Shown here in pieces: positions 14,001-57,549 of a stretch of DNA of 64,000 bases. Made by a program: the position numbers and the translations under genes. The DNA is from Auanema rhodensis (Eukaryota > Animalia > Nematoda): NCBI GenBank assembly GCA_964057225.1, contig OZ059900.1, forward strand, positions 6,944,001 to 7,008,000. The letters are read 5' to 3'. Below the pieces are notes generated by a model. It did not search any database, was not told the origin of the DNA, and saw only the letters and a list, made by a program, of their open reading frames with translations. Each line of letters begins with the position of its first letter. Within the stretch, counting starts at the first letter, position 1.

Positions 14001-14972
14001 ACCTCTCCGGATATTTGTTCAGAGCCTCATCACCCTTCAGCAGAACCAGAACAACGGGAACTTCATAGTGTTAAAAAGCAGAAGACATGCCATAGCGAAT
14101 CAAATGCAAATAGGATCGATACTCTATCTTTCAAGAAGCAACTTTCAAATCTCAAAAGTTATAGCACAATCAAATACACACTCAAACAAAATATACCTTT
14201 TCGTCTTCCTTTTAACATCAAATGTGAAAAATTAGAAACACAAAAGGAATTAAGACATACCAACTTTGCAGAAAAGGTGATAAGAGAAATATATTTTGCC
14301 GAACCTGAATATGGCACCTATATGGATTACACGCGAAATGATCCAGATGCAGAAAACGATTCAATTTATCAGAAGAATAAAGCAGAGAAACGGGCAGCTT
14401 TCACACGCACAGTTCAAAAAAGATACCAACCTTCATCCTTCAGTAAATACAATGAACCGATCGCAATGATGGAGCAGTATGATGAGAAGACAGCAAAACT
14501 TATTCCAACTCGACAACATAAATCACTAGAAGAATTTAGAGATAAGGAAGCAAAACGTATTGTCGTTGACATACACCGAGCCTTTTTTATCGAGCATTTG
14601 GATTATATTAAATGGTTGCATCAAGTAAGCCTTGTACCAAATACGTTTGTTCATCCAATCTATCAGCCTTTCTTTAACGTCAATTTCAAGTTCCGAACGG
14701 TTTTCCGAAGAAATAAAGAATTACCTGAAGAAAAACTCCGAATCGTAATCGGATACGATCATTCAATTAACAAAAAAATTGAAATCTTTTTCACGCCTGA
14801 TGGGAATGGCGCTTATGAAGAAGCACGTCAACCTAAAAATCTACTGTGCTTACAAAATGCATACGACAACCGGGTTGATCAAACCCCATCTCCGCTAATG
14901 TCAGACACTCTTTTGGATTCTGTTGAAATGCCTGCAGGTCTACGAGCAGAACTGAGAACCTATTTGAAGTAG
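8084..14972 (+). CDS. Large (~2,200 aa) largely disordered Q/N/S/M-rich protein with 47-aa internal repeats and a probably globular C-terminal region; function unknown
   Basis: In-frame GT-AG exons at ~8084-8403, 8450-8605, 8652-8690, 8734-8874 and 8918-9073, then a 5.85-kb terminal exon 9120-14972 (the 1947-aa ORF). The first exon and start codon are unresolved. Confidence 0.85.
12160..12760 (+). repeat. Coding tandem repeat with a 141-bp (47-aa) period: 4 copies, plus a dispersed copy at ~11160-11285
   Basis: ATCAACTTATCCGCTCAAGGTGTGCAAC recurs at ~12225, 12366, 12507, 12648 and ~11228 (peptide QALINLSAQGVQPG). Confidence 0.9.
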
Positions 14973-36409: not shown

Positions 36410-39008
36410 ATTCAATACTTTAATAGACTTGTTTCCGCTTCGTTTGAAACGCAAGTTTTCAGTAACCACAAGGCAATTTGGAAAAATTGATATGGCTTAG
36501 GCTATATATGCACAAGAACATTTAGAGAGAAAAGCGACACGAAAAACGAAATTGTGGCTTAGCAGCTGTGTGCATAGAATGTAAAATAGAAGATTGTGAA
36601 TATTCATCGAGTTGGCATAATGATTAAGCAATGTTTTTTTTGTGCAAAATACAGATATATGATATACATTACTTGATCATTTATTTATATATTCAAAGAC
36701 ATTGCTTATGCGTTTCCGAAAGTTTCAGGAAAAGACAAACAATGAAAGAGAATGATTGTTTCACACGTACTTAACTATATTACTTCTTTATGTAAATAAT
36801 GATATGAAAAAGAGTGTTATAAAAAAAATAATTTTATAAAAGAGTTATGGTTATGAAAAAAAACTATTAATAAGAAAAATATTAAATTAAAAGTTTAAAT
36901 TTAATGATGATGTTGTTGACATTGATGAAGGCAGCATTATTTGGTATAAATTGAGATAGGTCCATTAAATTGTGTGGATATAAACAGAGCGCTCGATGTT
37001 GCTGACGTAGAGGTGTGTTATGGATGAATAGGAGGTCTGAGGGGAGAAAGAGAAGATACGTATAGATATGCGATATAATCGTTCATGTTATGTAGATCAT
37101 GTTATGATTCCGAATTATACACCAAAGGTTAATGTGTGAAAATACATTATTATCTATTTTATTTCGAGAAACAAAAATTATAGTTAGAAAAGCGAAACGA
37201 GCACAAATTGCAACAGATTTATAGAGAAAATTATGAATAGTGTAGATATTGGCAAAAACTTAGATTAATGTTCATAAAATAAATATTAATTCGCTCTAAT
37301 TGAGTGAGAAAATACGTTTGGAGGTTTACAAATTTTCTATCATATCAATCTCTAAATTTTTTTTTCTGGTTCAAAACAATTTGTTCATATCTAAACATTC
37401 CTTTATCATTTTTTTTATCAACATCTATTACTTTCTTCCTCTTTCGTGTTGTATTGTTGTGGATTATCATTTGTTATTTTTCTTTTTTTTTGTTGATTAA
37501 TTACATGTGCACTCAAATTAATTTCTATTTACTAATTAATTTTGAAATTTTTTATATTCATTTTATAATATTATTGATAGCTTCTAGCCTTATAATGAAA
37601 AAAGTAGGTTTTATGTCTTAAATACTTAATTTTTTATTTATTTCTTAATTTGAGAACAAACCAATCTCATATTAAGGCTCATATATATATATAAAATAGG
37701 CTTATTACAGATATTTGGCATGTTGGAAAACCGATAAATCATTCACATTTACTAAACTATTTCACTATTATATACTTATGATACTAGACTGAAGATTATC
37801 TAAAAATAGTTATCTCATTCATGAAACCATGAGACTTACTCTAGTTGAATAAACCTTTGAAAACATTTAATTTTTCCACTAGTGCCTTAATAAACTTGCA
37901 CTTGCATGCTAGGTTCTGTTATATATTACACATTATATTTAAAAATTAGTTTCATTTCGCAGACTCTCATCCATATCTCAGTATATCATTCAAATTAACA
38001 GTTTTCCAGAGAGATGTGCCATCGTTTTCATGACAGATTAACTAGCTATAGAGTTTCATGTCCATTCTCATCTACCGAAGGGGGTACAACGTGAAGTTAA
38101 AACCGGTCTATACGTGGCCTATCTATTCAAATCGGAGAACCATGTGGACATCCACAAATGCATACATATACACGAAAATCATGTGTGAAGAAGAATATGA
38201 TAGGAAATTTAGATACTAAATGTAGAGAGAACTGAAGAAAAGTATGCGAGAAGATAAAGCAAACAGCTAACTACCGGAGTTCTAGAAAGAACTCAGCAAT
38301 TATGGCAAAGGAAATAAGATGAGATCAAAGATATTGAAGTGGCCTGAAAACAACGTTTTATATTATACCATCTGTTCTACAACAACCTATGACCGAAACT
38401 GTAAAAAGAATGTATAGAGCCAATTGTTTCCAGTTTTCTCACTCATGAGAAATCAATAGCATCTTTCTTAAATTTGAGATCAATTAAATTTTTTAGGTTT
38501 AAATAGTTACAAGTTTGCTGTTTTTTGTGGAACAACTTCATATGCTTTCAATATTTTCCGATAGAAAATATTAAAAGACGTCTCTCATGTACACTTTTTT
38601 ATAATGTTTATCTATATACTTATAGAAAACTATAAAATAATATTAATTATATATACATATATATAATATATTATGGGAATAGGAAGGACGCGATAGACGC
38701 GATGTCAAAGAGTAGTACTGACATGACTTCATGAAGGCTATAATCACTTACTCGAAAAAAAAAATTTTTTAAATTTTTTTGTGATTATTATAAAAAAAAA
38801 TTTTTACTATTATATATATATATATAGAATACAGAAGAAATAATTAATAAGAAATCAACGAATTGTCTATATCTGGCACTTATTCGAAGGCACCAATGAA
38901 CGGTACACCCAAAATAATCAAATCAGATTTTTTTATCAAATGAGTGTGTGCACTAGTATGAAGTACGACGCAGATTTTTAATGTTTAGGGTTCTGACGAC
39001 ATTGCAGT

Positions 39009-39192
39009 ATCGCTTCTCGGCCTTTTGGCTAAGATCAAAGTGTAGTAATCGTTCTTATCGAATTAACCTTCGATATGTGTTCCATTGGTTCACAATAAGG
39101 TTAACCGATTTTTGAGACCTGAGGTAGATGCTGGCTTGCTAGCTCCATCTCACGGGTCGACCCGCTCTTGCACTGCTGGCGGGAACGGCCCA
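39009..39192 (+). ncRNA. U2: U2 spliceosomal snRNA, full length, variant just 3' of the branch-point recognition sequence
   Basis: Begins ATCGCTTCTCGGCCTTTTGGCTAAGATCAAAGTGTAGTA; stem IIa ATCGAA...TTCGAT; Sm site GATTTTTG; stem IV loop TTGCACTGC; ends GGCCCA. Confidence 0.95.
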
Positions 39193-39209
39193 TCCCCTTT
39201 GGGGGAGAA

Positions 39210-39356
39210 TAATCGTTCTTATCGAATTAACCTTCGATATGTGTTCCATTGGTTCACAATAAGGTTAACCGATTTTTGAGACTTGAGGTAGATGCTGGCT
39301 TGCTAGCTCCATGTCACGGGTTGACCCGCTCTTGCACTGCAGGCGGGAACGGCCCA
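39210..39356 (+). pseudogene. 5'-truncated tandem U2 copy lacking stem I and the branch-point recognition sequence
   Basis: Near-identical to 39046-39192 with a few substitutions. Confidence 0.9.
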
Positions 39357-39378
39357 TCCCCCCTAGGGGGAGAATAGT

Positions 39379-39477
39379 TGTTCTTATCGAATTAACCTTC
39401 GATATGTGTTCCATTGGTTAACCGATTTTTGAGACTTGAGGTAGATGCTGGCTTGCTAGCTCCATCTCACGGGTCGA
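39379..39477 (+). pseudogene. Third U2 fragment, truncated at both ends, with a 12-nt internal deletion, fused to the 5S repeat unit
   Basis: GTTCTTATCGAATT...CCATTGGTT^AACCGATTTTTG...GGGTCGA, then joins AAGCATGAGCG (same as 42163 onward). Confidence 0.88.
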
Positions 39478-40030
39478 ATAGAAAGCATGAGCGAAGGAAG
39501 TCATGTCTCTTCTGATGAATTGACAGAGTTTAAGTACCAAAAGTAAAGGAATCAGGAGATTAAATGACAGTTTGAAGATGAAAACGTGAATGTTGTAATT
39601 CTGATTTGTATTATTGTTTCTTTTGAGCACCGAGAATTTCAGTGATCATGAATAAAACTTAACAACTGACAGACATCTACTTGGGATTTTATTTATTCGA
39701 TATTTAACTATAAATTTGTTTTTTGTTATAATAAACAATTATTATACTTTGTTTATATTTTTTATTTTATTTATAAATAAATACCTGATAGTACTTGTGG
39801 ATATATTAATGATCATGGAAAAGTTATTTAATATATCATTTCATGTAAACGAAATGAGCAATAGAATATTCATTTCACGATGTAAAAATATAAATGACGG
39901 TTTTTCCTTCATGAGACAATGAATAAAAGAGTATAACGCAGATGTTTTATTTCTGCCAAACGTTGTGCACTTTCTGCTACCACATACAACGAAGTTCACA
40001 ATTATAAGCGGTCAACTAAACTCTAACTTC

Positions 40031-40149
40031 GCTTACGACCATACCACGTTGAAAGTACGCCATCCCGTCCGATCTGGCAAGTCAAGCAACGTTGGGCCCG
40101 GTTAGTACTTGGATCGGAGACGGCTTGGGAATCCCGGGTGCCGTAAGCT
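40031..40149 (+). rRNA. 5S rRNA (copy 1)
   Basis: 119 nt, GCTTACGACCATACCACGTTGAAAG...GTAAGCT, with internal A and C boxes and a TTTT/TTTTT Pol III terminator. Confidence 0.97.
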
Positions 40150-40207
40150 TTTCATTTTTCATTTAAAAAAAAGTATCAGAAAATAGTTATTGACAATGGG
40201 ATATACG

Positions 40208-40226
40208 CTCTATTGATACGCGGGAA
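40208..40226 (+). promoter_or_regulatory. Conserved motif CTCTATTGATACGCGGGAA containing an E2F-like TTCCCGCG site, between 5S and gene A
   Basis: Present in all four units, with diverged versions at ~41818-41836 (+) and ~56880-56899 (-). Confidence 0.45.
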
Positions 40227-40396
40227 TATATTATATTTTAAATAAAAAATGCTCCAAATGTCATAATGATTCTATTTCCAATTATTATTTTTTCTTACAT
40301 ATATAGCTTGTTAAATACTTTTTTTTAATTTAATTCTTTTATTTTTCAGTAAATTCAATTGTCTTAGTTTAACCAAGTAGGTCATCGAAAATCAAA

Positions 40397-40969
40397 ATGG
40401 TTAGTAAATCTTGTTATGTTATTTCCAATTTATATTGTTGTAGAATTTTGTTGATGAATCATTTGTTAATGAAGGAAAAGTTGTGAGAAAAGAGTCAAAG
40501 AGACAATCACAAAATATTCGGCAGAGTAGAAGAAGAAGCGTGATGTCAACTGAGAATAGTAGTAACAAGGTTAGGATATTATATAGTTTATCAATCTATT
40601 AATCGTTTATAATAGAATGCACTGAATCAGAACAACGGAATTATTTCCGACGACGAAGAAATGAATAATCGTATGCTCTTTGATTTTGGTCTACTGACAG
40701 ACGAAACAAAGATGCATAAGAAAATTGAACAAGTTTTAAGGAAAATAGAAATAGCTGAAGAGGAAAACTATAGAAGAGAACGAGAGCATAAGAATAACAT
40801 GTGCAGAGAATATCAAAAGCTTCAATCCCTTATGACTCAACATCTTCGATTTCTTGCCAGTGAAATCGAAGTTTATTTTGATAATAGCATGACAGTTCCA
40901 AAGCCATTGATGACAGAATATGAGGAGACTAGAAGATATTTCAAAGAAATTATGAATAACATGGATTAA
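40397..40969 (+). CDS. 5S-spacer gene A, copy 1: 160-aa protein with a basic disordered N-terminus and a helical/coiled-coil C-terminus; exons 40397-40399, 40444-40569, 40616-40969
   Basis: Upstream TTTTTCAG (trans-splice-like acceptor), an ATG-only first coding exon and two phase-0 GT-AG introns give MNFVDESF...RQSRRRSVMS...SDDEEMNNRMLF...EIMNNMD. Confidence 0.8.
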
Positions 40970-41716
40970 CCATAGCGAGTTGTAAACTATATGCTATATT
41001 CTTTTAAATTATGAATTTTCCCCTTTGCCTTGTAAAATATGTTATTTGTATTCAAATACTTGCTTCTATTCTGTGAATATGCTGTGATTTGTTGTTTTAT
41101 TTTTAAATTAGAATTTGTTTAAGGTTATGATGATTGCAAGACTTTTCACAATTTTTCAATCTTGTACTATTATACAGAATATAAAAATATTATGAATGAT
41201 TAAACCTTTTATATGTTTGACATACCAATATCATCATTTGAACTGACATGGTAGAAATTATTTCGAAAACTACAATTGGTGTAAACTTGAAGCAACATTT
41301 TCATTCACTTCTCAAAAAAAAACTTTAAATTTTGTGTTCATTTTCTCAATAGCATATTAAATGAGTTTAAAGGGCAAATTTGAGGATTAACCTGAAAATG
41401 TTTTCTAGAGAGTCTGGAGAGTACGGTATATTATACTTTTTTCAAATAATTATCTTCTAATGTTTCTCTTTATCTACATATTCATGGCGAACTATGTAAT
41501 GAAAATATATTTGTATATAAATTGAAGAACATGAAGGAAAGAGCCTCAAGGGGTAAAAGTGACATGAATTCATGAAGGTCACAGTTACTCGAAATTGTTT
41601 TGTGACTTTTAAATAAAAAATTTATGTTTATTTCATATTTATATACACCTATATTCAGTAGTTTTTGAGAGAAAAAATGCGAAATCCACCAATTGAACAA
41701 ATCTGACCCCTCACGT

Positions 41717-41740
41717 AAGTCATCCCGGGTGCCGCAAGCC
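41717..41740 (+). pseudogene. Remnant of a 5S rRNA 3' end (mirror copies at ~50842-50865 and ~53101-53124)
   Basis: ATCCCGGGTGCCGCAAGC versus 5S ATCCCGGGTGCCGTAAGC (17/18), followed by flank resembling the 5S downstream flank. Confidence 0.7.
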
Positions 41741-41989
41741 AATTTATCTTTTGCTAAAAGTCTTTGAAGAATTAACAAATCTTTCTAAAAAAATGTTTAT
41801 CGGCAACCACTTGTGTGCTCTAATGATACGCGGGGGATAGTTCGATACTGTGAGCAATTCAAACATTGTATGGATTTAATTAATTTTCTGTACAACTAAT
41901 TTAAGTATTTATTTAATGTTTTTGATCATTTTATTGTAATTGCAGTTGTTTTTAATCTTAAATTCTAATTTCCAGTTGAAGAGGTGACT

Positions 41990-42267
41990 ATGGACAACGA
42001 AAACGATCTCAGTGATGAACAACTTGTGAACAGAAATCAACCGAGTTTGCTTCTCATGCTAGAGCAGAAGAACGGTTAATTCATACCAAACAAGTGAAAC
42101 ATCTCAAACTTCATTGTATGATTATTGATAAAATGAGCGAAATGCTTGAGGAAATAAAAGTAAGCATGAGCGAAGGAAGTCATGTCTCTTCTGATGAATT
42201 GACAGAGTTTAAGTACCAAAAGTAAAGGAATCAGGAGATTAAATGACAGTTTGAAGATGAAAACGTG
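41990..42267 (+). pseudogene. Gene B: frameshifted, diverged paralog of gene A
   Basis: TTTCCAG acceptor, then ATG MDNENDLSDEQ... stopping at 42079. A second frame reads RAEERL...EIKVSMSEGSHVSSDELTEF, which aligns without gaps to gene A EIEVYFDNSMTVPKPLMTEY. Confidence 0.55.
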
Positions 42268-42709
42268 AATGTTGTAATTCTGATTTGTATTATTGTTTCT
42301 TTTGAGCACCGAGAATTTCAGTGATCCTGAATAAAACTTAACAACTGACAGACATCTACTTGAGATTTTATTTATTCGATATTTAACTATAAATTTGTTT
42401 TTTGTTATAATAAACAATTATTATACTTTGTTTATATTTTTTATTTTATTTATAAATAAATACCTGATAGTACTTGTGGATATATTAATGATCATGGAAA
42501 AGTTATTTAATATATCATTTCATGTAAACGAAATGAGCAATAGAATATTCATTTCACGATGTAAAAATATAAATGACGGTTTTCCCTTCATAAGACAATG
42601 AATAAAAGAGTATAACGCAGATGTTTTATTTCTGCCAAACGTTGTGCACTTTCTGCTACCACATACAACGAAGTTCACAATTATAAGCGGTCAACTAAAC
42701 TCTAACTTC

Positions 42710-42828
42710 GCTTACGACCATACCAAGTTGAAAGTACGCCATCCCGTCCGATCTGGCAAGTCAAGCAACGTTGGGCCCGGTTAGTACTTGGATCGGAGAC
42801 GGCTTGGGAATCCCGGGTGCCGTAAGCT
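42710..42828 (+). rRNA. 5S rRNA (copy 2, C17A variant)
   Basis: Identical to copy 1 except C>A at 42726. Confidence 0.93.
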
Positions 42829-43075
42829 TTTCATTTTTCATTTAAAAAAAAGTTTCAGAAAATAGTTATTGACAATGGGATATACGCTCTATTGATACGC
42901 GGGAATATATTATATTTTAAATAAAAAATGCTCCAAATGTCATAATGATTCTATTTCCAATTATTATTTTTTCTTACATATATAGCTTGTTAAATACTTT
43001 TTTTTAATTTAATTCTTTTATTTTTCAGTAAATTCAATTGTCTTAGTTTAACCAAGTAGGTCATCGAAAATCAAA

Positions 43076-43648
43076 ATGGTTAGTAAATCTTGTTATGTTA
43101 TTTCCAATTTATATTGTTGTAGAATTTTGTTGATGAATCATTTGTTAATGAAGGAAAAGTTGTGAGAAAAGAGTCAAAGAGACAATCACAAAATATTCGG
43201 CAGAGTAGAAGAAGAAGCGTGATGTCAACTGAGAATAGTAGTAACAAGGTTAGGATATTATATAGTTTATCAATCTATTAATCGTTTATAATAGAATGCA
43301 CTGAATCAGAACAACGGAATTATTTCCGACGACGAAGAAATGAATAATCGTATGCTCTTTGATTTTGGTCTACTGACAGACGAAACAAAGATGCATCGGA
43401 AAATTGAACAAGTTTTAAGGAAAATAGAAATAGCTGAAGAGGAAAACTATAGAAGAGAACGAGAGCATAAGAATAACATGTGCAGAGAATATCAAAAGCT
43501 TCAATCCCTTATGACTCAACATCTTCGATTTCTTGCCAGTGAAATCGAAGTTTATTTTGATAATAGCATGACAGTTCCAAAGCCATTGATGACAGAATAT
43601 GAGGAGACTAGAAGATATTTCAAAGAAATTATGAATAACATGGATTAA
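43076..43648 (+). CDS. 5S-spacer gene A, copy 2
   Basis: Same structure, offset 2679 bp; MHRK instead of MHKK. Confidence 0.8.
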
Positions 43649-44571
43649 CCATAGCGAGTTGTAAACTATATGCTATATTCTTTTAAATTATGAATTTTCC
43701 CCTTTGCCTTGTAAAATATGTTATTTGTATTCAAATACTTGCTTCTATTCTGTGAATATGCTGTGATTTGTTGTTTTATTTTTAAATTAGAATTTGTTTA
43801 AGGTTATGATGATTGCAAGACTTTTCACAATTTTTCAATCTTGTACTATTATACAGAATATAAAAATATTATGAATGATTAAACCTTTTATATGTTTGAC
43901 ATACCAATATCATCATTTGAACTGACATGGTAGAAATTATTTCGAAAACTACAATTGGTGTAAACTTGAAGCAACATTTTCATTCACTTCTCAAAAAAAA
44001 ACTTTAAATTTTGTGTTCATTTTCTCAATAGCATATTAAATGAGTTTAAAGGGCAAATTTGAGGATTAACCTGAAAATGTTTTCTAGAGAGTCTGGAGAG
44101 TACGGTATATTATACTTTTTTCAAATAATTATCTTCTAATGTTTCTCTTTATCTACATATTCATGGCGAACTATGTAATGAAAATATATTTGTATATAAA
44201 TTGAAGAACATGAAGGAAAGAGCCTCAAGGGGTAAAAGTGACATGAATTCATGAAGGTCACAGTTACGCTTTCTAGCAAACCACAAAGATAGAATATAAT
44301 GTAAATGAATGCACATTGATATGTTCGAAATGAAGGTAAAAATATAAAAATACTTAATTTTTAAACTTTACGACTGATGAATTATAATAGAAAAACAAAA
44401 AATTAGACATCCTTCAGTTATAGTGTAACATGACTTCATTGATTGGATATTGGCATATTTGTATTTTAGATTGAGTGTATATAACATCTTAGTCTAAATG
44501 ATATGTTCTAGGTACAACGCATACATTCAGTGGATCGGATCCTCTACAGGTTAGTTTCAAAAATAAAAAAA

Positions 44572-44653
44572 TCTCTCTCTCTATACATCTCTCTCTCTCT
44601 ATACATCTCTCTCTCTCTCTATACATCTCTCTCTCTCTATACATCTCTCTCTC
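44572..44653 (+). repeat. Compound (CT)n-ATACAT microsatellite: 4 units here, 5 units in the mirror copy at ~48333-48433
   Basis: Read directly from both arms. Confidence 0.9.
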
Positions 44654-44825
44654 ACTTGCTTACTTTCTCACCTACTCTCTCATCAGTTCTTCTCTGAATA
44701 TCTGTAATCAACTGTGAATGTTTCTGAAATTCTGGAGAAATTGTGAACTATTTACTGATATTTCAATGTTTTTTTACATTTCTGTCGAAACTGTAGATCC
44801 TAAATTATTTGTCAACTCTAAGAGT

Positions 44826-44899
44826 ATTGGCGTGATGACCAAGTGGTTATGCATGAAGTCTTTCCCACTATCATCGAAAGTTCGATTCCTTCAATGAAT
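44826..44899 (+). pseudogene. tRNA-like relic with Pol III A and B boxes
   Basis: A-box-like TGACCAAGTGG within a D-arm hairpin (ATGACC/GGTTAT) and T-arm GAAAG-TTCGATT-CCTTC. The anticodon and acceptor stems do not pair. Confidence 0.55.
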
Positions 44900-45629
44900 T
44901 TTGAAAAAATCAATACTAATTCTAAAATCTAAAAAACGTTTGGATGGATTTGGCTTGTAAAAAATGATATCTTTTGATGTTTATAGACGTATAAAACTTG
45001 TTCCACGCCGTTTTTTTGAATTCTCTTTCTTCGTATGAACAGCGAATGAATATATCTAGTCCAATGCAAAAATTCATAACGATATCTCTGTTGGCACAAA
45101 AGTTATAACTTTCTAAAAATAAGACAAAAAGCAAAAACATTGACTTTGAACGGCTTTATCTTCTTAACCAATGAGTTTTCTCAAAATTTTTCAAAAGATT
45201 CGAGCTCTACTCGTAAAGATCTTTCGAATGAGTTGTTGATCTAAAGGATTAGAGCATTTTGAAATTTTAAGAAATAAAGAATTTGACCAATTTAGAATTA
45301 ATAAAATAAAATTTTTCAGTTTTCTAACATTTAAGTATTGCATTTGAATAAACTAAACACGCTGATTTTAAATTTGAAAACCGAATTTCTCAATTCTCAC
45401 GCTGAAAGGAGTTGTGAGACTTTGAAATTTTTGGCGTTAATCATTCAGAAGGCTATAACTTCGTTAAAATGGAATTTCAGAGACTCCCACTTAGTTTAAT
45501 CGTCTTCTCCGTCTTTCATTCATTTTGAATGTTGTTTTCACAACTTTTCTACAAAATTTTTATTTTTTGTTAAAATTGTTCAATTCCATGTACTCCCCCC
45601 TTACCTACTTTTCGGTCATAACAATCGAT

Positions 45630-47260
45630 ATCATTGGAATTCTCAAAGCATTTTCTAATTTCTTTGTTAACTATGTGGTACAATCTAGACTCAATAACGC
45701 TCAGATATGAAACTTTCATTGGAATTCTTAAAACATTTTCTACTTTTCTTGTTAACTCTGTGGTATAATCAAGACTCAATAACGCTCAGATATGAGTCTT
45801 TCATTGGAATTCTCAAAACATTTTCTAATTTGTTCGTTAACTATGTGGTATAATCAAAACTCAAAAACGCTTAGATATATCATATAAGATGAGTCTTTCA
45901 ATGGAATTCTCAAAGCATTTTCTAATTTCTTTGTTAACTATGTGGTACAATCTAGACTCAATAACGCTTAGATATGAAACTTTCATTGGAATTCTTAAAA
46001 CATTTTCTACTTTTCTTGTTAACTCTGTGGTATAATCAAGACTCAATAACGCTCAGATATGAGTCTTTCATTGGAATTCTCAAAACATTTTCTAATTTGT
46101 TCGTTAACTATGTGGTATAATCAAAACTCAAAAACGCTTAGATATATCATATAAGATGAGTCTTTCAATGGAATTCTCAAAGCATTTTCCAATTTCTTTG
46201 TTAACTATGTTGTAATCAAGACTCAAAAACGCTTAGATATATCATATAAGATGAGTCTTTCAATGGAATTCTCAAAGCATTTTCCAATTTCTTTGTTAAC
46301 TATGTGGTATAATCAAGACTCAATAACGCTTAGATATATCATATAAGATGAGTCTTTCAATGGAATTCTCAAAGCCTTTTCCAATTTCTTTGTTAACTAT
46401 GTGGTATAATCAAGACTCAAAAACGCTTAGATATATCATATAAGATGAGTCTTTCAATGGAATTTTCAAAGCATTTTCCAATTTCTTTGTTAACTATGTG
46501 GTATAATCAAGACTCAATAACGCTTAGATATATCATATAAGATGAGTCTTTCAATGGAATTCTCAAAGCATTTTCCAATTTCTTTGTTAACTATGTGGTA
46601 TAATCAAGACTCAAAAACGCTTAGATATATCATATAAGATGAGTCTTTCAATGGAATTTTCAAAGCATTTTCCAATTTCTTTGTTAACTCTGTGGTATAA
46701 TCAAGACTCAATAACGCTCAGATATGAGTCTTTCAATGGAATTCTCAAAGCATTTTCCAATTTCTTTGTTAACTATGTGGTATAATCAAGACTCAATAAC
46801 GCTTAGATATATCATATAAGATGAGTCTTTCAATGGAATTCTCAAAGCCTTTTCCAATTTCTTTGTTAACTATGTGGTATAATCAAGACTCAAAAACGCT
46901 TAGATATATCATATAAGATGAGTCTTTCAATGGAATTTTCAAAGCATTTTCCAATTTCTTTGTTAACTATGTGGTATAATCAAGACTCAATAACGCTTAG
47001 ATATATCATATAAGATGAGTCTTTCAATGGAATTCTCAAAGCATTTTCCAATTTCTTTGTTAACTATGTGGTATAATCAAGACTCAAAAACGCTTAGATA
47101 TATCATATAAGATGAGTCTTTCAATGGAATTTTCAAAGCATTTTCCAATTTCTTTGTTAACTATGTGGTATAATCAAGACTCAATAACGCTTAGATATAT
47201 CATATAAGATGAGTTTTTCATTTGATTTCTAAAAATATTCACTAATTTCCTTGTGTTGTT
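45630..47260 (+). repeat. Satellite of ~17-18 monomers of 85 or 97 bp
   Basis: TTAACT(A/C)TGT starts at 45667, 45752, 45837, 45934, 46019, 46104, 46201, 46296, 46393 and on to 47157. The long form carries a 12-bp insert (ATCATATAAGAT). Confidence 0.97.
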
Positions 47261-48086
47261 ACTATGTGTTGTATGATACATCTAAGCGTTATTGAGTCTA
47301 GATTGTACCACATAGTTAACGAAGAAATTAGAAAACGTTTTGAGAATTCCAATGATATCGATTGTTATGACCGAAAAGTAGGTAAGGGGGGAGTACATGG
47401 AATTGAACAATTTTAACAAAAAATAAAAATTTTGTAGAAAAGTTGTGAAAACAACATTCAAAATGAATGAAAGACGGAGAAGACGATTAAACTAAGTGGG
47501 AGTCTCTGAAATTCCATTTTAACGAAGTTATAGCCTTCTGAATGATTAACGCCAAAAATTTCAAAGTCTCACAACTCCTTTCAGCGTGAGAATTGAGAAA
47601 TTCGGTTTTCAAATTTAAAATCAGCGTGTTTAGTTTATTCAAATACAATACTTAAATGTTAGAAAACTGAAAAATTTTATTTTATTAATTCTAAATTGGT
47701 CAAATTCTTTATTTCTTAAAATTTCAAAATGCTCTAATCCTTTAGATCAACAACTCATTCGAAAGATCTTTACGAGTAGAGCTCGAATCTTTTGAAAAAT
47801 TTTGAGAAAACTCATTGGTTAAGAAGATAAAGCCGTTTAAAGTCAAAGTTTTAGCTTTTTGTCTTATCTTTAGAAAGTTATAACTTTTGTGCCAACAGAG
47901 ATATCGTTATGAATTTTTGCATTGGACTAGATATATTCATTCGCTGTTCATACGAAGAAAGAGAATTCAAAAAAACGGCGTGGAACAAGTTTTATACGTC
48001 TATAAACATCAAAAGATATCATTTTTTACATGCCAAATCCATCCAAACGTTTTTTAGATTTTAGAATTAGTATTGATTTTTTCAAA

Positions 48087-48160
48087 ATTCATTGAAGGAA
48101 TCGAACTTTCGATGATAGTGGGAAAGACTTCATGCATAACCACTTGGTCATCACGCCAAT
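48087..48160 (-). pseudogene. tRNA-like relic, mirror copy
   Basis: Reverse complement of 44826-44899. Confidence 0.55.
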
Positions 48161-49355
48161 ACTCTTAGAGTTGACAAATAATTTAGGATCTACAGTTTCG
48201 ACAGAAATGTAAAAAAACATTGAAATATCAGTAAATAATTCACAATTTCTCCAGAATTTCAGAAACATTCACAGTTGATTACAGATATTCAGAGAAGAAC
48301 TGATGAGAGAGTAGGTGAGAAAGTAAGCAAGTGAGAGAGAGATGTATAGAGAGAGAGAGATGTATAGAGAGAGAGAGAGATGTATAGAGAGAGAGAGATG
48401 TATAGAGAGAGAGAGATGTATAGAGAGAGAGATTTTTTTATTTTTGAAACTAACCTGTAGAGGATCCGATCCACTGAATGTATGCGTTGTACCTAGAACA
48501 TATCATTTAGACTAAGATGTTATATACACTCAATCTAAAATACAAATATGCCAATATCCAATCAATGAAGTCATGTTACACTATAACTGAAGGATGTCTA
48601 ATTTTTTGTTTTTCTATTATAATTCATCAGTCGTAAAGTTTAAAAATTAAGTATTTTTATATTTTTACCTTCATTTCGAACATATCAATGTGCATTCATT
48701 TACATTATATTCTATCTTTGTGGTTTGCTAGAAAGCGTAACTGTGACCTTCATGAATTCATGTCACTTTTACCCCTTGAGGCTCTTTCCTTCATGTTCTT
48801 CAATTTATATACAAATATATTTTCATTACATAGTTCGCCATGAATATGTAGATAAAGAGAAACATTAGAAGATAATTATTTGAAAAAAGTATAATATACC
48901 GTACTCTCCAGACTCTCTAGAAAACATTTTCAGGTTAATCCTCAAATTTGCCCTTTAAACTCATTTAATATGCTATTGAGAAAATGAACACAAAATTTAA
49001 AGTTTTTTTTTGAGAAGTGAATGAAAATGTTGCTTCAAGTTTACACCAATTGTAGTTTTCGAAATAATTTCTACCATGTCAGTTCAAATGATGATATTGG
49101 TATGTCAAACATATAAAAGGTTTAATCATTCATAATATTTTTATATTCTGTATAATAGTACAAGATTGAAAAATTGTGAAAAGTCTTGCAATCATCATAA
49201 CCTTAAACAAATTCTAATTTAAAAATAAAACAACAAATCACAGCATATTCACAGAATAGAAGCAAGTATTTGAATACAAATAACATATTTTACAAGGCAA
49301 AGGGGAAAATTCATAATTTAAAAGAATATAGCATATAGTTTACAACTCGCTATGG

Positions 49356-49928
49356 TTAATCCATGTTATTCATAATTTCTTTGAAATATCTTCTAGTCTC
49401 CTCATATTCTGTCATCAATGGCTTTGGAACTGTCATGCTATTATCAAAATAAACTTCGATTTCACTGGCAAGAAATCGAAGATGTTGAGTCATAAGGGAT
49501 TGAAGCTTTTGATATTCTCTGCACATGTTATTCTTATGCTCTCGTTCTCTTCTATAGTTTTCCTCTTCAGCTATTTCTATTTTCCTTAAAACTTGTTCAA
49601 TTTTCCGATGCATCTTTGTTTCGTCTGTCAGTAGACCAAAATCAAAGAGCATACGATTATTCATTTCTTCGTCGTCGGAAATAATTCCGTTGTTCTGATT
49701 CAGTGCATTCTATTATAAACGATTAATAGATTGATAAACTATATAATATCCTAACCTTGTTACTACTATTCTCAGTTGACATCACGCTTCTTCTTCTACT
49801 CTGCCGAATATTTTGTGATTGTCTCTTTGACTCTTTTCTCACAACTTTTCCTTCATTAACAAATGATTCATCAACAAAATTCTACAACAATATAAATTGG
49901 AAATAACATAACAAGATTTACTAACCAT
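49356..49928 (-). CDS. 5S-spacer gene A, copy 3
   Basis: Inverted copy with intact ORF and splice sites. Confidence 0.8.
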
Positions 49929-50175
49929 TTTGATTTTCGATGACCTACTTGGTTAAACTAAGACAATTGAATTTACTGAAAAATAAAAGAATTAAATTAA
50001 AAAAAAGTATTTAACAAGCTATATATGTAAGAAAAAATAATAATTGGAAATAGAATCATTATGACATTTGGAGCATTTTTTATTTAAAATATAATATATT
50101 CCCGCGTATCAATAGAGCGTATATCACATTGTCAATAACTATTTTCTGATACTTTTTTTTAAATGAAAAATGAAA

Positions 50176-50294
50176 AGCTTACGGCACCCGGGATTCCCAA
50201 GCCGTCTCCGATCCAAGTACTAACCGGGCCCAACGTTGCTTGACTTGCCAGATCGGACGGGATGGCGTACTTTCAACGTGGTATGGTCGTAAGC
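50176..50294 (-). rRNA. 5S rRNA (copy 3)
   Basis: Reverse complement of copy 1. Confidence 0.97.
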
Positions 50295-51613
50295 GAAGTT
50301 AGAGTTTAGTTGACCGCTTATAATTGTGAACTTCGTTGTATGTGGTAGCAGAAAGTGCACAACGTTTGGCAGAAATAAAACATCTGCGTTATACTCTTTT
50401 ATTCATTGTCTCATGAAGGAAAAACCGTCATTTATATTTTTACATCGTGAAATGAATATTCTATTGCTCATTTCGTTTACATGAAATGATATATTAAATA
50501 ACTTTTCCATGATCATTAATATATCCACAAGTACTATCAGGTATTTATTTATAAATAAAATAAAAAATATAAACAAAGTATAATAATTGTTTATTATAAC
50601 AAAAAACAAATATCGAATAAATAAAATCCCAAGTAGATGTCTGTCAATAAATTGATCAAAAACATTAAATAAATACTTAAATTAGTTGTACAGAAAATTA
50701 ATTAAATCGATACAATGTTTGAATTGCTCACAGTATCGAACTATCCCCCGCGTATCATTAGAGCACACAAGTGGTTACCGATAAACATTTTTTTTTAGAA
50801 AAATTTGTTAGTTCTTCAAAGACTTTTAGCAAAAGATAAATTGGCTTGCGGCACCCGGGATGACTTACGTGAGGGGTCAGATTTGTTCAATTGGTGGATT
50901 TCACATTTTTTCTCTCAAAAACTACTGAATATAGGTGTATATAAATATGAAATAAACATAAATTTTTTATTTAAAAGTCACAAAACAATTTCGAGTAACT
51001 GTGACCTTCATGAATTCATGTCACTTTTACCCCTTGAGGCTCTTTCCTTCATGTTCTTCAATTTATATACAAATATATTTTCATTACATAGTTCGCCATG
51101 AATATGTAGATAAAGAGAAACATTAGAAGATAATTATTTGAAAAAAGTATAATATACCGTACTCTCCAGACTCTCTAGAAAGCATTTTCAGGTTAATCCT
51201 CAAATTTGCCCTTTAAACTCATTTAATATGCTATTGAGAAAATGAACACAAAATTTAAAGTTTTTTTTTGAGAAGTGAATGAAAATGTTGCTTCAAGTTT
51301 ACACCAATTGTAGTTTTCGAAATAATTTCTACCATGTCAGTTCAAATGATGATATTGGTATGTCAAACATATAAAAGGTTTAATCATTCATAATATTTTT
51401 ATATTCTGTATAATAGTACAAGATTGAAAAATTGTGAAAAGTCTTGCAATCATCATAACCTTAAACAAATTCTAATTTAAAAATAAAACAACAAATCACA
51501 GCATATTCACAGAATAGAAGCAAGTATTTGAATACAAATAACATATTTTACAAGGCAAAGGGGAAAATTCATAATTTAAAAGAATATAGCATATAGTTTA
51601 CAACTCGCTATGG

Positions 51614-52186
51614 TTAATCCATGTTATTCATAATTTCTTTGAAATATCTTCTAGTCTCCTCATATTCTGTCATCAATGGCTTTGGAACTGTCATGCTATT
51701 ATCAAAATAAACTTCGATTTCACTGGCAAGAAATCGAAGATGTTGAGTCATAAGGGATTGAAGCTTTTGATATTCTCTGCACATGTTATTCTTATGCTCT
51801 CGTTCTCTTCTATAGTTTTCCTCTTCAGCTATTTCTATTTTCCTTAAAACTTGTTCAATTTTCCGATGCATCTTTGTTTCGTCTGTCAGTAGACCAAAAT
51901 CAAAGAGCATACGATTATTCATTTCTTCGTCGTCGGAAATAATTCCGTTGTTCTGATTCAGTGCATTCTATTATAAACGATTAATAGATTGATAAACTAT
52001 ATAATATCCTAACCTTGTTACTACTATTCTCAGTTGACATCACGCTTCTTCTTCTACTCTGCCGAATATTTTGTGATTGTCTCTTTGACTCTTTTCTCAC
52101 AACTTTTCCTTCATTAACAAATGATTCATCAACAAAATTCTACAACAATATAAATTGGAAATAACATAACAAGATTTACTAACCAT
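51614..52186 (-). CDS. 5S-spacer gene A, copy 4
   Basis: Inverted copy offset 2258 bp from copy 3. Confidence 0.8.
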
Positions 52187-52433
52187 TTTGATTTTCGATG
52201 ACCTACTTGGTTAAACTAAGACAATTGAATTTACTGAAAAATAAAAGAATTAAATTAAAAAAAAGTATTTAACAAGCTATATATGTAAGAAAAAATAATA
52301 ATTGGAAATAGAATCATTATGACATTTGGAGCATTTTTTATTTAAAATATAATATATTCCCGCGTATCAATAGAGCGTATATCCCATTGTCAATAACTAT
52401 TTTCTGATACTTTTTTTTAAATGAAAAATGAAA

Positions 52434-52552
52434 AGCTTACGGCACCCGGGATTCCCAAGCCGTCTCCGATCCAAGTACTAACCGGGCCCAACGTTGCTTG
52501 ACTTGCCAGATCGGACGGGATGGCGTACTTTCAACGTGGTATGGTCGTAAGC
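52434..52552 (-). rRNA. 5S rRNA (copy 4)
   Basis: Reverse complement of copy 1. Confidence 0.97.
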
Positions 52553-53455
52553 GAAGTTAGAGTTTAGTTGACCGCTTATAATTGTGAACTTCGTTGTATG
52601 TGGTAGCAGAAAGTGCACAACGTTTGGCAGAAATAAAACATCTGCGTTATACTCTTTTATTCATTGTCTCATGAAGGAAAAACCGTCATTTATATTTTTA
52701 CATCGTGAAATGAATATTCTATTGCTCATTTCGTTTACATGAAATGATATATTAAATAACTTTTCCATGATCATTAATATATCCACAAGTACTATCAGGT
52801 ATTTATTTATAAATAAAATAAAAAATATAAACAAAGTATAATAATTGTTTATTATAACAAAAAACAAATATCGAATAAATAAAATCCCAAGTAGATGTCT
52901 GTCAATAAATTGATCAAAAACATTAAATAAATACTTAAATTAGTTGTACAGAAAATTAATTAAATCGATACAATGTTTGAATTGCTCACAGTATCGAACT
53001 ATCCCCCGCGTATCATTAGAGCACACAAGTGGTTACCGATAAACATTTTTTTTTAGAAAAATTTGTTAGTTCTTCAAAGACTTTTAGCAAAAGATAAATT
53101 GGCTTGCGGCACGCGGGATGACTTACGTTAAAAGATCTCTTTGAAGATGTGCAACAAATTCTTATAGATTGTTTTGAAACGGTAATGAGCTCTATATTAG
53201 TTATCAGATTTTGATTGTTTATATTGAATTCTCAAACAGAAGAGAATTATCAAATCAAAGAATTATCACTCAGGAACGGTTATAAATTTTTTATAAAAAA
53301 AAAAGAAAAAGTTCAAATACATATACGTTTTCTTACATCACAATACGAATTTACTAATATTTTCTTTCAGCTCTCTTTGGAAATCAGTAGAATGTTGTTT
53401 TCGCGTTTTCGGCAGCCTACAATGTTTATTGATTAAAAAAATTTAATGAAAATTT

Positions 53456-56408
53456 TTAGAACTTGTTGATATTATATTGTATAGAAGTTTCCCATCTATT
53501 GATTATCAGTAAGAAAGGGATATAGTCTCTTGCTACATCATCAGAACAGAGGTTATAAAGCAAGTTCATGATAGCGCGTAAAGTTTTGTAATTTTGGGGA
53601 CGATACGTTTTCCGCTGAAATGCGACAATATAGGATAACGAAGTAAAGTTTGAACTAACAACAAACTTTTGAATAATTGGGTGGTAGTCGATTTTTTGAG
53701 ATTTTTTAAGTGCCTTGTTATAAGGATAATCATCGCAAGGTTCATAGTTCAGATCGCCAATCCTCTTATAATATCTATTCTCGATCAATATAGGCAAGGA
53801 CTAGTAGAAAGAATGTATACTTTAGAACTTCAATATTATTAGATACCGTGCTAATGAGATCAAATTGCAATTGATTCAGAAGACCTCGAATATCCTGCTT
53901 CAATACATGGTTTTGCAAAATATTCATCAAATCTATCTCATCAATGTATTTTTCGGTGAAAGCAAAAACACAAACCTGAATAAAAAAGTGGATAATTGCT
54001 TCAAGTATAGTAAACTTACTGATGCGTACAATGCCACAACCTTTTTGTTAAACTTATCCAAAGAAATTGTTTTATAATTCCATAACTTTATATATTCTTG
54101 TGGTATCTTTGTACAGGTTAATATTACAGGTTGATCAGATTGGGCAATTAAATTTTCTAATTTACGGTAAAAACCTTGATCGTACTTTTTAAAATAGATG
54201 TCAATCTGTAAAAAAAAGCTAATCTACTGAATAAACTTAAAGTTCCATCTTAAATTTACATAAACTTACATCTTCAACTAAAAGTATTGCGTTTTTTGTG
54301 GATTTATTTCGTAGGCCTATTGATTTTGGAAAAAAACATCTTTTGGAAAGTGTCGAGTGTTCTATACCTACATCCACGTTCTGTATTATACAGTCGAAGT
54401 CAGCAGCTATAGAATGAACCTACGTGAAGAAAATACATATTCTAAATATCAACAAACTATACTAACTAATGATGTTTTTCCTGAGCCGGTTGGCCCTTCA
54501 ATTATGAAAGGAATTGGAGAAAATGTCTTCTCATTCTTGTTGCGATACGATTCTGATGAATATACATCTATACGTTTCATCTATGTTTCTTACAAACTTT
54601 TGTTTCGTTGCTTCCATCTCTCTTCAACAAAGTTCTTGACTTGATCGCAAGCACTTTTGCTTCCTAACCAGAGGGCTGATGCAGTAGGCTGTAATGCTTG
54701 TGGCCATGCAAGAGTCTTAGCTTTTTGGCGACTGTTCAAAGCATGATTATACCAGATAGCTCGAATATCCTGATTAAATCTGTTGCCATTTTATTTGACT
54801 GAATTCAACTGAAAGCTTACACATTGATCACTTCTTTCATAGTTTTAGAACTTATAACAGGTAGAAAATGAGCTTTACTTTTTGTTGAATCCACCTTTTT
54901 ATAAAATGAGATTGGAGTTCTCTTTGGAGGTAACGTCCATGTCTGAACATTTTTTACATTAATTTATGATTTAAAAAGTCAGAAAATCTTACTGGATCTA
55001 TTACAGGCTCGATATATGTAGGTAAAACATTGAAACGTGAAAACGGAGCGTGATCATACTTTCTGTGAACTGAATAATAAAATTTGAGCATCATCTTGAA
55101 AATATATTTCTGACCTTTCATTTTTAAGGGATGTGTAGGTAATGTTCTGCTAATTTTCTGTTCTACAAATGTTTTGTTCTCAAGAACCTAAACTAATTAA
55201 AATATGTACAAGCCTTTATAAAACTATTGCATATAGATGACATATTTCAAAAATAACTGTTCACAAACCTTTTCACACGTAACACTAATACAGTTTTCAG
55301 CTGCCGATTTAGATGATTCGAATGGTGAAACTTGCTCAGCGGGACAACTTTTATCTAGATTTGAAGATCCTTTTTTAATTGTAGAAGTTTCTGTGTTTAT
55401 AATGGGCAATTTTGCAGTATCGTTACAAATTTCCTTTTTAGAGCAAATTATTTTCTCTTCAACACTACTATTTGAAGATGCTTCACAATTATCAATAAAG
55501 CCATTTAGCTTTACAGTATTCACAGAACTAAGTCGTTTAGGATCAGAAAACTTTTTCTGAATTTAACAAAATGAATATGAAAATTGATGATGACAACTTA
55601 CAATTTGTTCTGTTTTGGTTCTTCTTGTTCTTAGTCCTGCAGTCTGCAATTATATAATTTTAGATTTCATATAATTCATTATGTAAAATCAGAGAATGTG
55701 AAACTCACAGTTGAGTTTTTCTTTCGAGGCGTTTTGTCAGCTTCGTTTTTAATATTTTTAATTTTTTCAGCAAACACACTAAAAAAGAACATAAATAATT
55801 GATTAAAAATAAGAAAATACTTTAAATATAACGGACCATTGTTACGTCGATCTAATTTTTCAATCTAAAATTAACTGAATAATAACGTTAACAACCACAA
55901 TTTTTACCTTTTCACGACTATTTGGAGTTAATTCCAGTTCTTTAGACACTTTAATATTATGAGTCTGAACCAACATTAAATGTTTGCAAATCAAAGAGCA
56001 ATATGGCATATTACCTCTGTACCATCGTCCTCATCAATAGGGGTATCGATTGGCATTCGAACAACGCCTTGCTTCTGTAAAATGAAAGTTAATAACTATT
56101 ACATATTACTTATAACACATACCCAACCATGCAATGGAGCTATTATACAAACTGAATTTCTATCGTGAAACTTAACGGTTCTCACATTCTATATGATGCT
56201 AAGCGTATATATCAGAAATATATTTTGTAGACGTACCTTTTCTTTTGGACCAGCAATTGAGCGAATAATGGGCTTTATATCTTCACTTAAGTGTTCTACA
56301 TCAACCTAAAAACAACTTTACTTTTAAAATAAATTATCAAAGAATAACCAAAATATTCTGTTTATTTGCAGCATTTTCTCTTAATGCAAGTGATCTTCTC
56401 GTAATCAT
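53456..56408 (-). CDS. ATAD5/ELG1-like RFC large subunit (AAA+ PCNA unloader)
   Basis: WPQALQP...LG (resembles the WTEKYQP box), Walker A IEGPTGSGKTSLV, Walker B region LLVEDIDIYF...GFYRKLENLIAQSDQPVILTC, and C-terminal DYIPFL. Multi-exon; ATG at 56408. Confidence 0.8.
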
Positions 56409-56971
56409 TTTAGCCAAATTCTGAAATTTCTTAGTAGTACAGCATGAAAACGAATGTTCATTTTCAAACATATGAACAGAAAAAAGTTTAACATATTTTA
56501 ATTATTTTGATGAATCTCACTGTATATTACAGAAAAAAAACACGAACACAAAATTCGTATAACAATTGCAAAATACCATTTCGAAAATGTAGAAAAAGCA
56601 GTATTTATCAAATGAAAGGTGTTTATTTGCAAAATTGCATATCATCACTAAGTATCCTTTTGTTTTGTGGTTTGGCTACTTGATTCACACCTTGGGTTGT
56701 ACAATGCATCGAATACTCCTTCATTCCAATTTGAAAACAAATAAATAACAAGAAATAATAGAAATTGTTGAATTCACTAAAGAAAAAAAAAGAAAAAAAA
56801 AGATGTCACGTGAAGAAAATCAATATATTATATAGTATAATATAATACTAACCATTTAAATGGCTCATAATACATAATTTACCCGCATCACAATAGATCA
56901 CGTACGTAACAAATAGTTATAATATCAATTTACCGTAATTTTTTGCTTTGCTCTACAAATAAAAGAATAAA

Positions 56972-57043
56972 GGTACCCAGTATTTTTACGCCATCTCTGA
57001 TTCAAGTACTACCAGAGCCCAACGTTAGTCGGCTGTTGTAAGC
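56972..57043 (-). pseudogene. Decayed 5S rRNA with an internal deletion
   Basis: Minus strand GCTTACAACA...AACGTTGGGCTCTGGTAGTACTTGAATCAGAGATGGCGTAAAAATACTGGGTACC is collinear with 5S nt 1-10 and ~58-112. Confidence 0.75.
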
Positions 57044-57184
57044 AACAACTTTGCTCTGTTACATTCTTTTTAATTTTTGTAATTTCATTTTATTCTTAAA
57101 GACAGTTTGAATATGAAGTCGAGAATCTTTATTATAGTCAACAGTTTAATTAGAGAACGAACTGAATAAATTCAATTGCTAATG

Positions 57185-57549
57185 TCATTCAATTCTAAAT
57201 TTCACTTTCATCTCCTCAAACTTTTCATTTATTTCATCCAGTGCTTCCAGAATGCTTTCTGGCAATGGCGTACCAGCGTCATCATTAGTTCGAATCAGAT
57301 CCTCAAAGGAGGTAATAGTTGTTACAAGAAGAGGTTGAAACTCGCGATACTCAACCAATAACAATGCACGTTTTTCTTTTTCTTTTGTAATGACATTGTC
57401 TATTACATCAAGTAGCTGTTTGAATTGTGTCATTGAAGCGTACATCTGTAAATCCATTGTATAAGTTATAAGTCATGAATGTTTTAACTTACCCTTCTTA
57501 ATTCAAAAGGTGAGGATGGGTTAACATTCTGTAAATATTGGCTGAACAT
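57185..57549 (-). CDS. Gene C: intact ~105-aa helical protein, diverged paralog of gene A; exons 57549-57493 and 57445-57185
   Basis: CTCTTCAG acceptor upstream and a phase-0 GTAAG...TTTACAG intron. Aligns without gaps to gene A at 12/59 identities (manual count). The N-terminus could extend further. Confidence 0.7.

Follow-up and report, generated by a model that had tools for sequence, protein, structure and literature searches.

The window analysed here is a 64,000-nucleotide stretch of the Auanema rhodensis genome (contig OZ059900.1, positions 6,944,001 to 7,008,000), in which genes for 5S ribosomal RNA (rRNA) lie near small putative protein-coding genes; coordinates below count from its first letter. 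The window is AT-rich (30% G+C). It was searched with the covariance models of Rfam, where the gathering threshold for 5S rRNA (RF00001) is 38 bits, and four full-length 5S genes were found, covering model positions 1-120 with scores of 103.5-107.5 bits. Those of units 1 and 2 lie on the plus strand, at 40031-40149 (107.5 bits) and 42710-42828 (103.5 bits, with a private C to A change at 5S position 17), and those of units 3 and 4 on the minus strand, at 50176-50294 and 52434-52552 (107.5 bits each). The T-run GCTTTTCATTTTTC, directly 3' of position 40149 in unit 1, reads as an RNA polymerase III terminator. An intact copy of a putative three-exon gene for a protein of 160 amino acids, here called gene A, starts 248 bp past each 5S gene on the same strand. 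Copy 1 was delimited by translation, codon score and predicted helical structure (40397-40969, plus strand; exons 40397-40399, 40444-40569 and 40616-40969), and tblastn placed the others at 43076-43648 (plus strand), 49356-49928 and 51614-52186 (both minus strand).

An nhmmer search of the 64 kb with 5S plus 85 nt downstream as the query returned eight 5S-related pieces and none beyond these, namely the four intact genes, one pseudo-5S and three 3'-tail remnants. The remnants, each with a conserved box that is treated below, were located by nhmmer and alignment at 41713-41834 on the plus strand (5S part 41713-41740) and at 50746-50863 and 53004-53128 on the minus strand, and the three copies gave E values of 1.3e-5, 9.2e-5 and 5.5e-4. 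The pseudo-5S, which is internally deleted (5S part ~57045-56975) and carries a variant of the box, occupies 56866-57045 on the minus strand (nhmmer E 1.2e-8, and alignment). Remnant and pseudo-5S are mutually independent old relic lineages, and together they support the conclusion that 5S copies arise and decay locally at this locus.

Two further small genes and one larger gene accompany these relics. Gene B (41990-42225, plus strand) follows the plus-strand remnant and is broken: its frame opens with the ATG at 41990, meets a stop after 29 codons and resumes in another frame at 42043-42225. Gene C (57185-57549, minus strand) is intact, encodes 105 amino acids in two exons (57549-57493 and 57445-57185), has an AATAAA about 50 nt past its stop and lies directly ahead of the pseudo-5S; upstream of it, nhmmer over the 64 kb found no 5S gene, relic or box. 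A multi-exon gene of ~3 kb with a Walker A P-loop, taken as a P-loop ATPase gene and recognised from reading frames and Pfam (minus strand, approximately 53430-56409), is flanked by the pseudo-5S and its box on one side and by the outermost 5S remnant on the other. An ATAD5-like name for it could not be confirmed, as Pfam gave generic P-loop matches only. Read along the minus strand, the order is gene C, pseudo-5S and box, P-loop gene, remnant and box, 5S and box, gene A, remnant and box, 5S and box, gene A, inner arm and satellite. An earlier note on this DNA had described the four pairs of intact 5S and three-exon gene (at ~250 bp), the frameshifted gene B behind a 5S 3'-end remnant and the intact gene C ahead of an internally deleted 5S, and all three descriptions hold.

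Self-comparison of the window revealed that the four units belong to a palindrome of 13.4 kb (39667-53128), with two tandem units per arm and outer ends read at 39484 and 53128. Three inverted arm pairs, 99-100% complementary, were recognised: 2,264 nt (42393-44656 with 48348-50611) and 2,080 nt (39714-41793 with 50790-52869), both about 100% complementary, and 1,135 nt (44572-45706 with 47280-48414). The tandem units are spaced 2,679 bp apart in the left arm versus 2,258 bp in the right, and the difference of 421 bp is a deletion of gene B from both right-arm junctions, so that the sole full copy of gene B is the one in the left arm. The arm ends also differ. The left arm is cut inside gene B by repeats of the U2 small nuclear RNA (snRNA) gene and has as its outer end a gene B tail fragment (last 21 codons and stop; 39484-39546, plus strand; tblastn 100% over 21 amino acids, repeat D3), whereas in the right arm the sequence passes by way of a 5S remnant to the P-loop gene. 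These differing ends and the indels argue against a fold-back artefact of assembly. Had the assembly joined sequences wrongly in inverted orientation, such as two haplotypes at the satellite array in the symmetry centre, the real locus would be one arm with two units. A satellite array is a typical site of wrong joins, and the divergence of the arms (~0.1-0.3%, plus indels) is within the allelic range; however, the arms would not be expected to end differently, nor gene B to be missing from both right-arm junctions, and a tandem duplication of two units would stand even so. We consider such an artefact quite improbable.

Across 1,875 common bp, the four units differ by eight substitution events and one 12-bp indel and are 99.6-99.9% identical. 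Five of the substitutions are private to unit 2, including the change within its 5S gene, and units 1, 3 and 4 have one each, while the indel sets the left arm apart from the right. Unit 1 resembles unit 4, its mirror image, more closely than unit 2, which stands in tandem with it. This pattern of variants fits no simple duplication tree, which makes exchange between the copies plausible, and gene conversion may keep the four alike. On this near-identity, the four modules of 5S and gene A are one evolutionary unit, copied very recently. The presence of four copies within 13 kb would also suit a mobile or selfish cassette, in which 5S, box and gene A move and copy as a unit. However, all four sit at one locus, where tandem and inverted duplication accounts for them, and the unit has no reading frame of more than 113 codons able to encode a transposase or reverse transcriptase, which leaves a cassette highly improbable.

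The box lies between the 5S gene and gene A in every unit. In unit 1, the 18-nt A-type box GCTCTATTGATACGCGGG is found 58 nt past the 5S end (40207-40224, plus strand), and its other copies are at 42886-42903 (plus), 50101-50118 (minus) and 52359-52376 (minus). The box core TGATACGCGGG occurs exactly seven times versus 0.26 times expected by chance, each time ~58-77 nt 3' of a 5S gene or remnant. These seven copies represent two independent lineages (four A-type boxes and the three B-type boxes of the remnants), and the variant TCTATTGTGATGCGGG beside the pseudo-5S is a third. In the old remnant, 17 of the 18 nt of the box and 18 of the 20 nt of the 5S tail are conserved, whereas the sequence that separates them has diverged and shows indels. 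The simplest reading of box and tail being equally well kept is that both were constrained in a working 5S unit until a fairly recent truncation. If they were constrained together as parts of that unit, no function of the box for the downstream gene is needed. A box also stands ahead of the P-loop gene, in which tblastn found no match to gene A; since the P-loop gene follows a 5S relic and box, the arrangement of 5S, box and gene does not mark the downstream gene as a member of a family. The conserved box is probably part of the 5S unit and not of gene A, and it may be a binding site that aids 5S transcription, or a boundary mark. We also considered the box as a proximal promoter element of the snRNA type (a SNAPc site). 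This was rejected, as the A-type and C-type boxes gave z below 0 against the upstream region of the window's U2 gene and only the B-type reached a z of 2.8.

The predicted structure of gene A is compact. Exon 1 is the ATG alone. The first of the two GT-AG introns measures 44 nt, and removal of the second, of 46 nt, leaves exons 2 and 3 in one continuous frame. A trans-splice-like TTTTCAG acceptor ends at 40349, 48 nt ahead of the ATG, and a T-rich CAG acceptor is located 10-50 nt 5' of the ATG in A, B and C alike, as in trans-spliced nematode genes. No AATAAA was found close to the stop codon of gene A. Copy 1 is distinguished from the other three by a single two-base change, AAG to CGG (K to R), at 40718-40719. 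As this is the only change in the coding sequence, a ratio of nonsynonymous to synonymous substitution rates (dN/dS) among the copies is not computable.

Taken together, we regard it as probable that this is a minor dispersed-5S locus at which one unit was recently duplicated in tandem and inverted orientation, with gene A passively co-amplified. The copied unit, of ~2.3-2.7 kb, would have comprised 5S, its own downstream box, gene A with its three exons and the relic of an old 5S tail; at first it would also have included the broken gene B. Very recent tandem and inverted copying would then have produced the 13.4-kb palindrome around the 97-bp satellite, with two units per arm. Being adjacent to 5S within the duplicated segment, gene A would have risen in copy number passively. 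The box would serve 5S and need not drive gene A. The relics next to gene B, gene C and the P-loop gene would date from older cycles in which 5S was duplicated here and decayed.

Several points weigh against this account. The palindrome is known from assembled sequence alone, and the splicing and expression of gene A are likewise predicted from sequence. When 64 kb of this composition was shuffled with a Markov model, a mean of 1.0 open frame of at least 117 codons was obtained. Three independent 5S lineages each precede a start codon on the same strand, which a pure bystander model does not predict; the distance from box to start is 175 nt for gene A, ~160 nt for gene B and ~480 nt for the P-loop gene. 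Among the 73 open frames of the window, exon 3 of gene A and exon 2 of gene C are each other's best match, and in the predicted structures gene C is a helix-loop-helix whose loop, in the A-C alignment, coincides with the proline loop of gene A. The similarity of A and C may therefore leave room for an older gene family. For the regions from 5S to start themselves (40150-40397, 41741-41990 and 56409-56975), the start codons come 250-570 bp downstream; with n=3, this is not significant.

The yield of the shuffled windows bears on whether gene A is a gene at all, for gene A, and perhaps gene C, could be chance open frames in a duplicated 5S spacer. The same shuffles gave a mean of 13.8 frames of at least 86 codons per 64 kb, and with this control reading-frame length was ruled out as coding evidence for gene A. 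The lack of homologues described below, an exon 1 that holds the ATG only and the missing AATAAA would also fit chance frames. However, a codon log-odds model trained on a 1,957-codon open frame of the window and on the exons of the P-loop gene was positive for exons 2 and 3 of gene A, for both exons of gene C and for the first piece of gene B. It ranked exon 3 of A and exon 2 of C 7th to 12th among 198 open frames, that is, in the top 6% (exon 3 of A alone, 7th-10th). The true frame of these two exons scored far above the five other frames, and three control frames were negative (-0.17 to -0.22). Chance frames would not be expected to join in frame over a 46-nt GT-AG intron behind a trans-splice-type acceptor, nor to have as their sole coding change a two-base swap of K for R. 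AlphaFold, run on the single sequence, predicted exon 3 of A to be all-helical, with helices at 12-23, 29-89 and 96-116 and a mean predicted local distance difference test score (pLDDT) of 82.8. We judge chance frames to be unlikely, though still to be reckoned with, and gene A quite likely to be a real coding gene. It is probably a lineage-restricted gene for a small all-helical protein, as the predicted structure suggests, and we infer that it is expressed and coding.

Searches for relatives of gene A gave little. A word-indexed search of 5.8 billion proteins returned no homologue of exon 3 of A or exon 2 of C. Against 1.84 billion representative proteins, phmmer with exon 3 of A found one match, a 788-amino-acid protein of seven coiled-coil repeats (E 5e-7); this match was dismissed as spurious, since its E value sums seven weak stretches. 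Nothing specific came from Pfam, from PDB sequences or from a Foldseek comparison with PDB, and an exact look-up of a 102-amino-acid reading frame in public assemblies produced no record. The open frame used for training, at 9129-14972 on the plus strand, is an uninterrupted, Q/S/N-rich reading frame of 1,947 amino acids (1,957 stop-free codons) with internal repeats of ~38 amino acids (type QALINLSAQGVQPG...) and a less repetitive C-terminal part. Pfam did not match it, and a search with its C-terminal 498 residues returned no homologue. As this long frame also lacks homologues, the databases may miss this species and its close relatives, and the label of orphan for gene A is a weak one.

The similarity of A and C leads to a different history, in which the locus would be an old alternating array of 5S and one family of helical proteins (A, B and C) undergoing birth and death, with the box as the family's promoter and homogenisation via 5S. 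Smith-Waterman scores against shuffled sequences gave z values of 3.8-4.1 for A-C (p 0.002-0.006), 2.1-2.8 for C-B and 0.6 for A-B. The A-C local alignment scores 53, compared with 31 for the reversed-sequence control, and is collinear with one gap, ending near both C-termini. When a profile of two of the three proteins was compared with the third, p was 0.02-0.07. The predicted structures of A and C are alike: a long helix leads into a loop that contains proline, a helix at the C-terminus follows, and the two loops align. The good acceptors ahead of the ATG in all three genes and the old 5S relics flanking B and C would fit a family as well. However, tblastn with gene A found neither B nor C in the window, BLASTP of A against C gave an E value of 5.1, and E/K/L-rich helical proteins easily outscore shuffled controls. 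The margins of the reciprocal best match are small (55 vs 46, and 51 vs 42), and the predicted model of gene C is weak (pLDDT 60.2). The array would be expected to hold members of different ages, but the four A units all stem from a young duplication. Neither 5S nor box precedes gene C, and what follows the pseudo-5S with its box is the unrelated P-loop gene. No homologue outside the window turned up in the searches. The evidence for a kinship of A and C is about evenly balanced, that of B with A or C is unproven, and we find an old array unlikely.

Much of this history had been put forward in the earlier note, and it fares unevenly. B and C, called diverged relatives of A there, are not established as such, and the old alternating array gives way, for gene A, to four copies of one recent unit, two in each palindrome arm. 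As to birth and death, 5S copies do arise and decay, as the two relic lineages attest, but membership of A, B and C in one family is not shown. Gene A does gain copy number together with 5S, as proposed. The suggested homogenisation is allowed by a variant pattern that fits no simple tree, with conversion itself only deduced from it. What was named a promoter motif is the box, which probably belongs to the 5S unit, as it is conserved in the relics about as well as the 5S tail, and none of the tests gave any sign of a selfish element or of a dosage role in the germline. A bolder form, in which A, B and C are true paralogs, dispersed 5S genes with the box are paired genome-wide with same-strand genes for small helical proteins, the box couples RNA polymerase III and II genes, and the family spreads and stays uniform by riding on 5S duplication, seems to us improbable.

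The remaining features of the palindrome lie at its centre and its left edge. The centre is a 1.6-kb array of about 15 copies of the 97-bp satellite (45695-47314; self-comparison and Tandem Repeats Finder, TRF), which has a higher-order period of 473 bp and whose copies are direct, not inverted. The inner part of the left arm (44268-45706, plus strand), mirrored at 47280-48736 (inverted pairs I1 and I5), holds an array of the 18-mer TCTCTCTCTCTATACATC and no convincing gene; the array comprises 4.4 copies on the left (44572-44653) and 5.4 on the right (48333-48432). By eye, a stretch resembling a transfer RNA (tRNA), with a B-box-like AGTTCGATTCC, is seen at 44829-44895 (plus strand) and mirrored in the right arm. 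ARAGORN called no tRNA in the window, and the stretch may be a decayed tRNA gene or a fragment of a short interspersed element. At the left edge, a full-length U2 snRNA gene (39009-39198, plus strand; Rfam RF00004, 146.7 bits) is followed by two partial tandem U2 pseudo-copies (39199-39483, plus strand; direct repeat D4, TRF period 164), which truncate the left arm within gene B. In the region 39046-39483 the pseudo-copies repeat the gene's own 3' two-thirds with a 164-bp period and 91% matches, and they stop exactly at the point within gene B where the left arm starts. The U2 match at 39356-39516 is weak, with 28.6 bits, under the threshold.

The upstream regions of the U2 gene (38961-38981) and of 5S (39929-39949), both on the plus strand, have the sequence AGTAyrACGCAGAT(G)TTTTA in common (z 4.1, p 0.003). 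It is located at ~-50 to -30 before U2 versus ~-100 to -84 before 5S, and may be a common upstream promoter element of the small-RNA genes of this species.

If the ordinary reading, local duplication with gene A as a passenger, is true, the locus would be a clear small case of dispersed 5S genes multiplying and decaying locally and taking a young neighbour gene to four copies. This would help to annotate the genome; the processes are known, and no new principle would follow. The three 5S lineages a few hundred bases upstream of same-strand starts could hint at a rule by which 5S settles or at an influence of 5S on its neighbours, and, like this arrangement, the conserved box ~60 nt past the 5S terminator may be worth following.

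In nematodes, the familiar partner of 5S is the spliced leader SL1. No SL1 leader was found in the 64-kb window with up to three mismatches, and the regions 3' of 5S have no similarity to SL1 genes (z below 1). The stretch GTTTAACCAAGTAGGT between 5S and gene A (40367-40382) looks SL1-like by eye; as a decayed SL1 it was rejected, with an alignment z below 1. A scan of metagenomes with the 5S tail yielded six nematode-like loci, of which four (L001, L003, L005 and L006) have SL1 beside 5S and none has the box or a relative of gene A; a scan with the combined pattern of 5S tail and box gave no match in metagenomes. The 5S genes of the soil-metagenome contigs L003 and L006 are 98.3% identical to those of the window. 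Their units are ~680-820 bp long with 42-43% G+C, and canonical SL1 lies on the strand opposite to 5S, the classical nematode layout that is missing from the window.

Three kinds of known system can be compared with this locus. Dispersed 5S genes occur in fungi such as Neurospora and Schizosaccharomyces, and as in those systems single 5S genes with their own flanking sequence stand here among ordinary protein-coding genes and form small clusters by local duplication; the palindromic duplication and the two kinds of old 5S relics beside young copies are different. Linkage of 5S to histone, snRNA or trans-spliced-leader genes, with 5S very occasionally dispersed, is mentioned in a passage of PMC10946416, citing Drouin and de Sa 1995. 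Like such units, the module described here has 5S and another gene duplicated as one same-strand unit, but the partner is small, intron-containing, without known relatives and a member of no known multigene family, and there are four young copies only. The nematode 5S-SL1 unit differs further, since the window has neither SL1 nor a long head-to-tail array. Palindromic amplicons with arms kept alike by gene conversion are also known, among them the palindromes of the human Y chromosome. Those share with this locus inverted arms of more than 99.6% identity, a spacer, a multi-copy small gene and a sharing of variants without a simple tree, whereas the locus here is far smaller (arms of 6 kb), includes a gene transcribed by RNA polymerase III, has its arms separated by a satellite and may or may not undergo gene conversion. 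We would class it as a dispersed 5S locus with a young palindromic segmental duplication.

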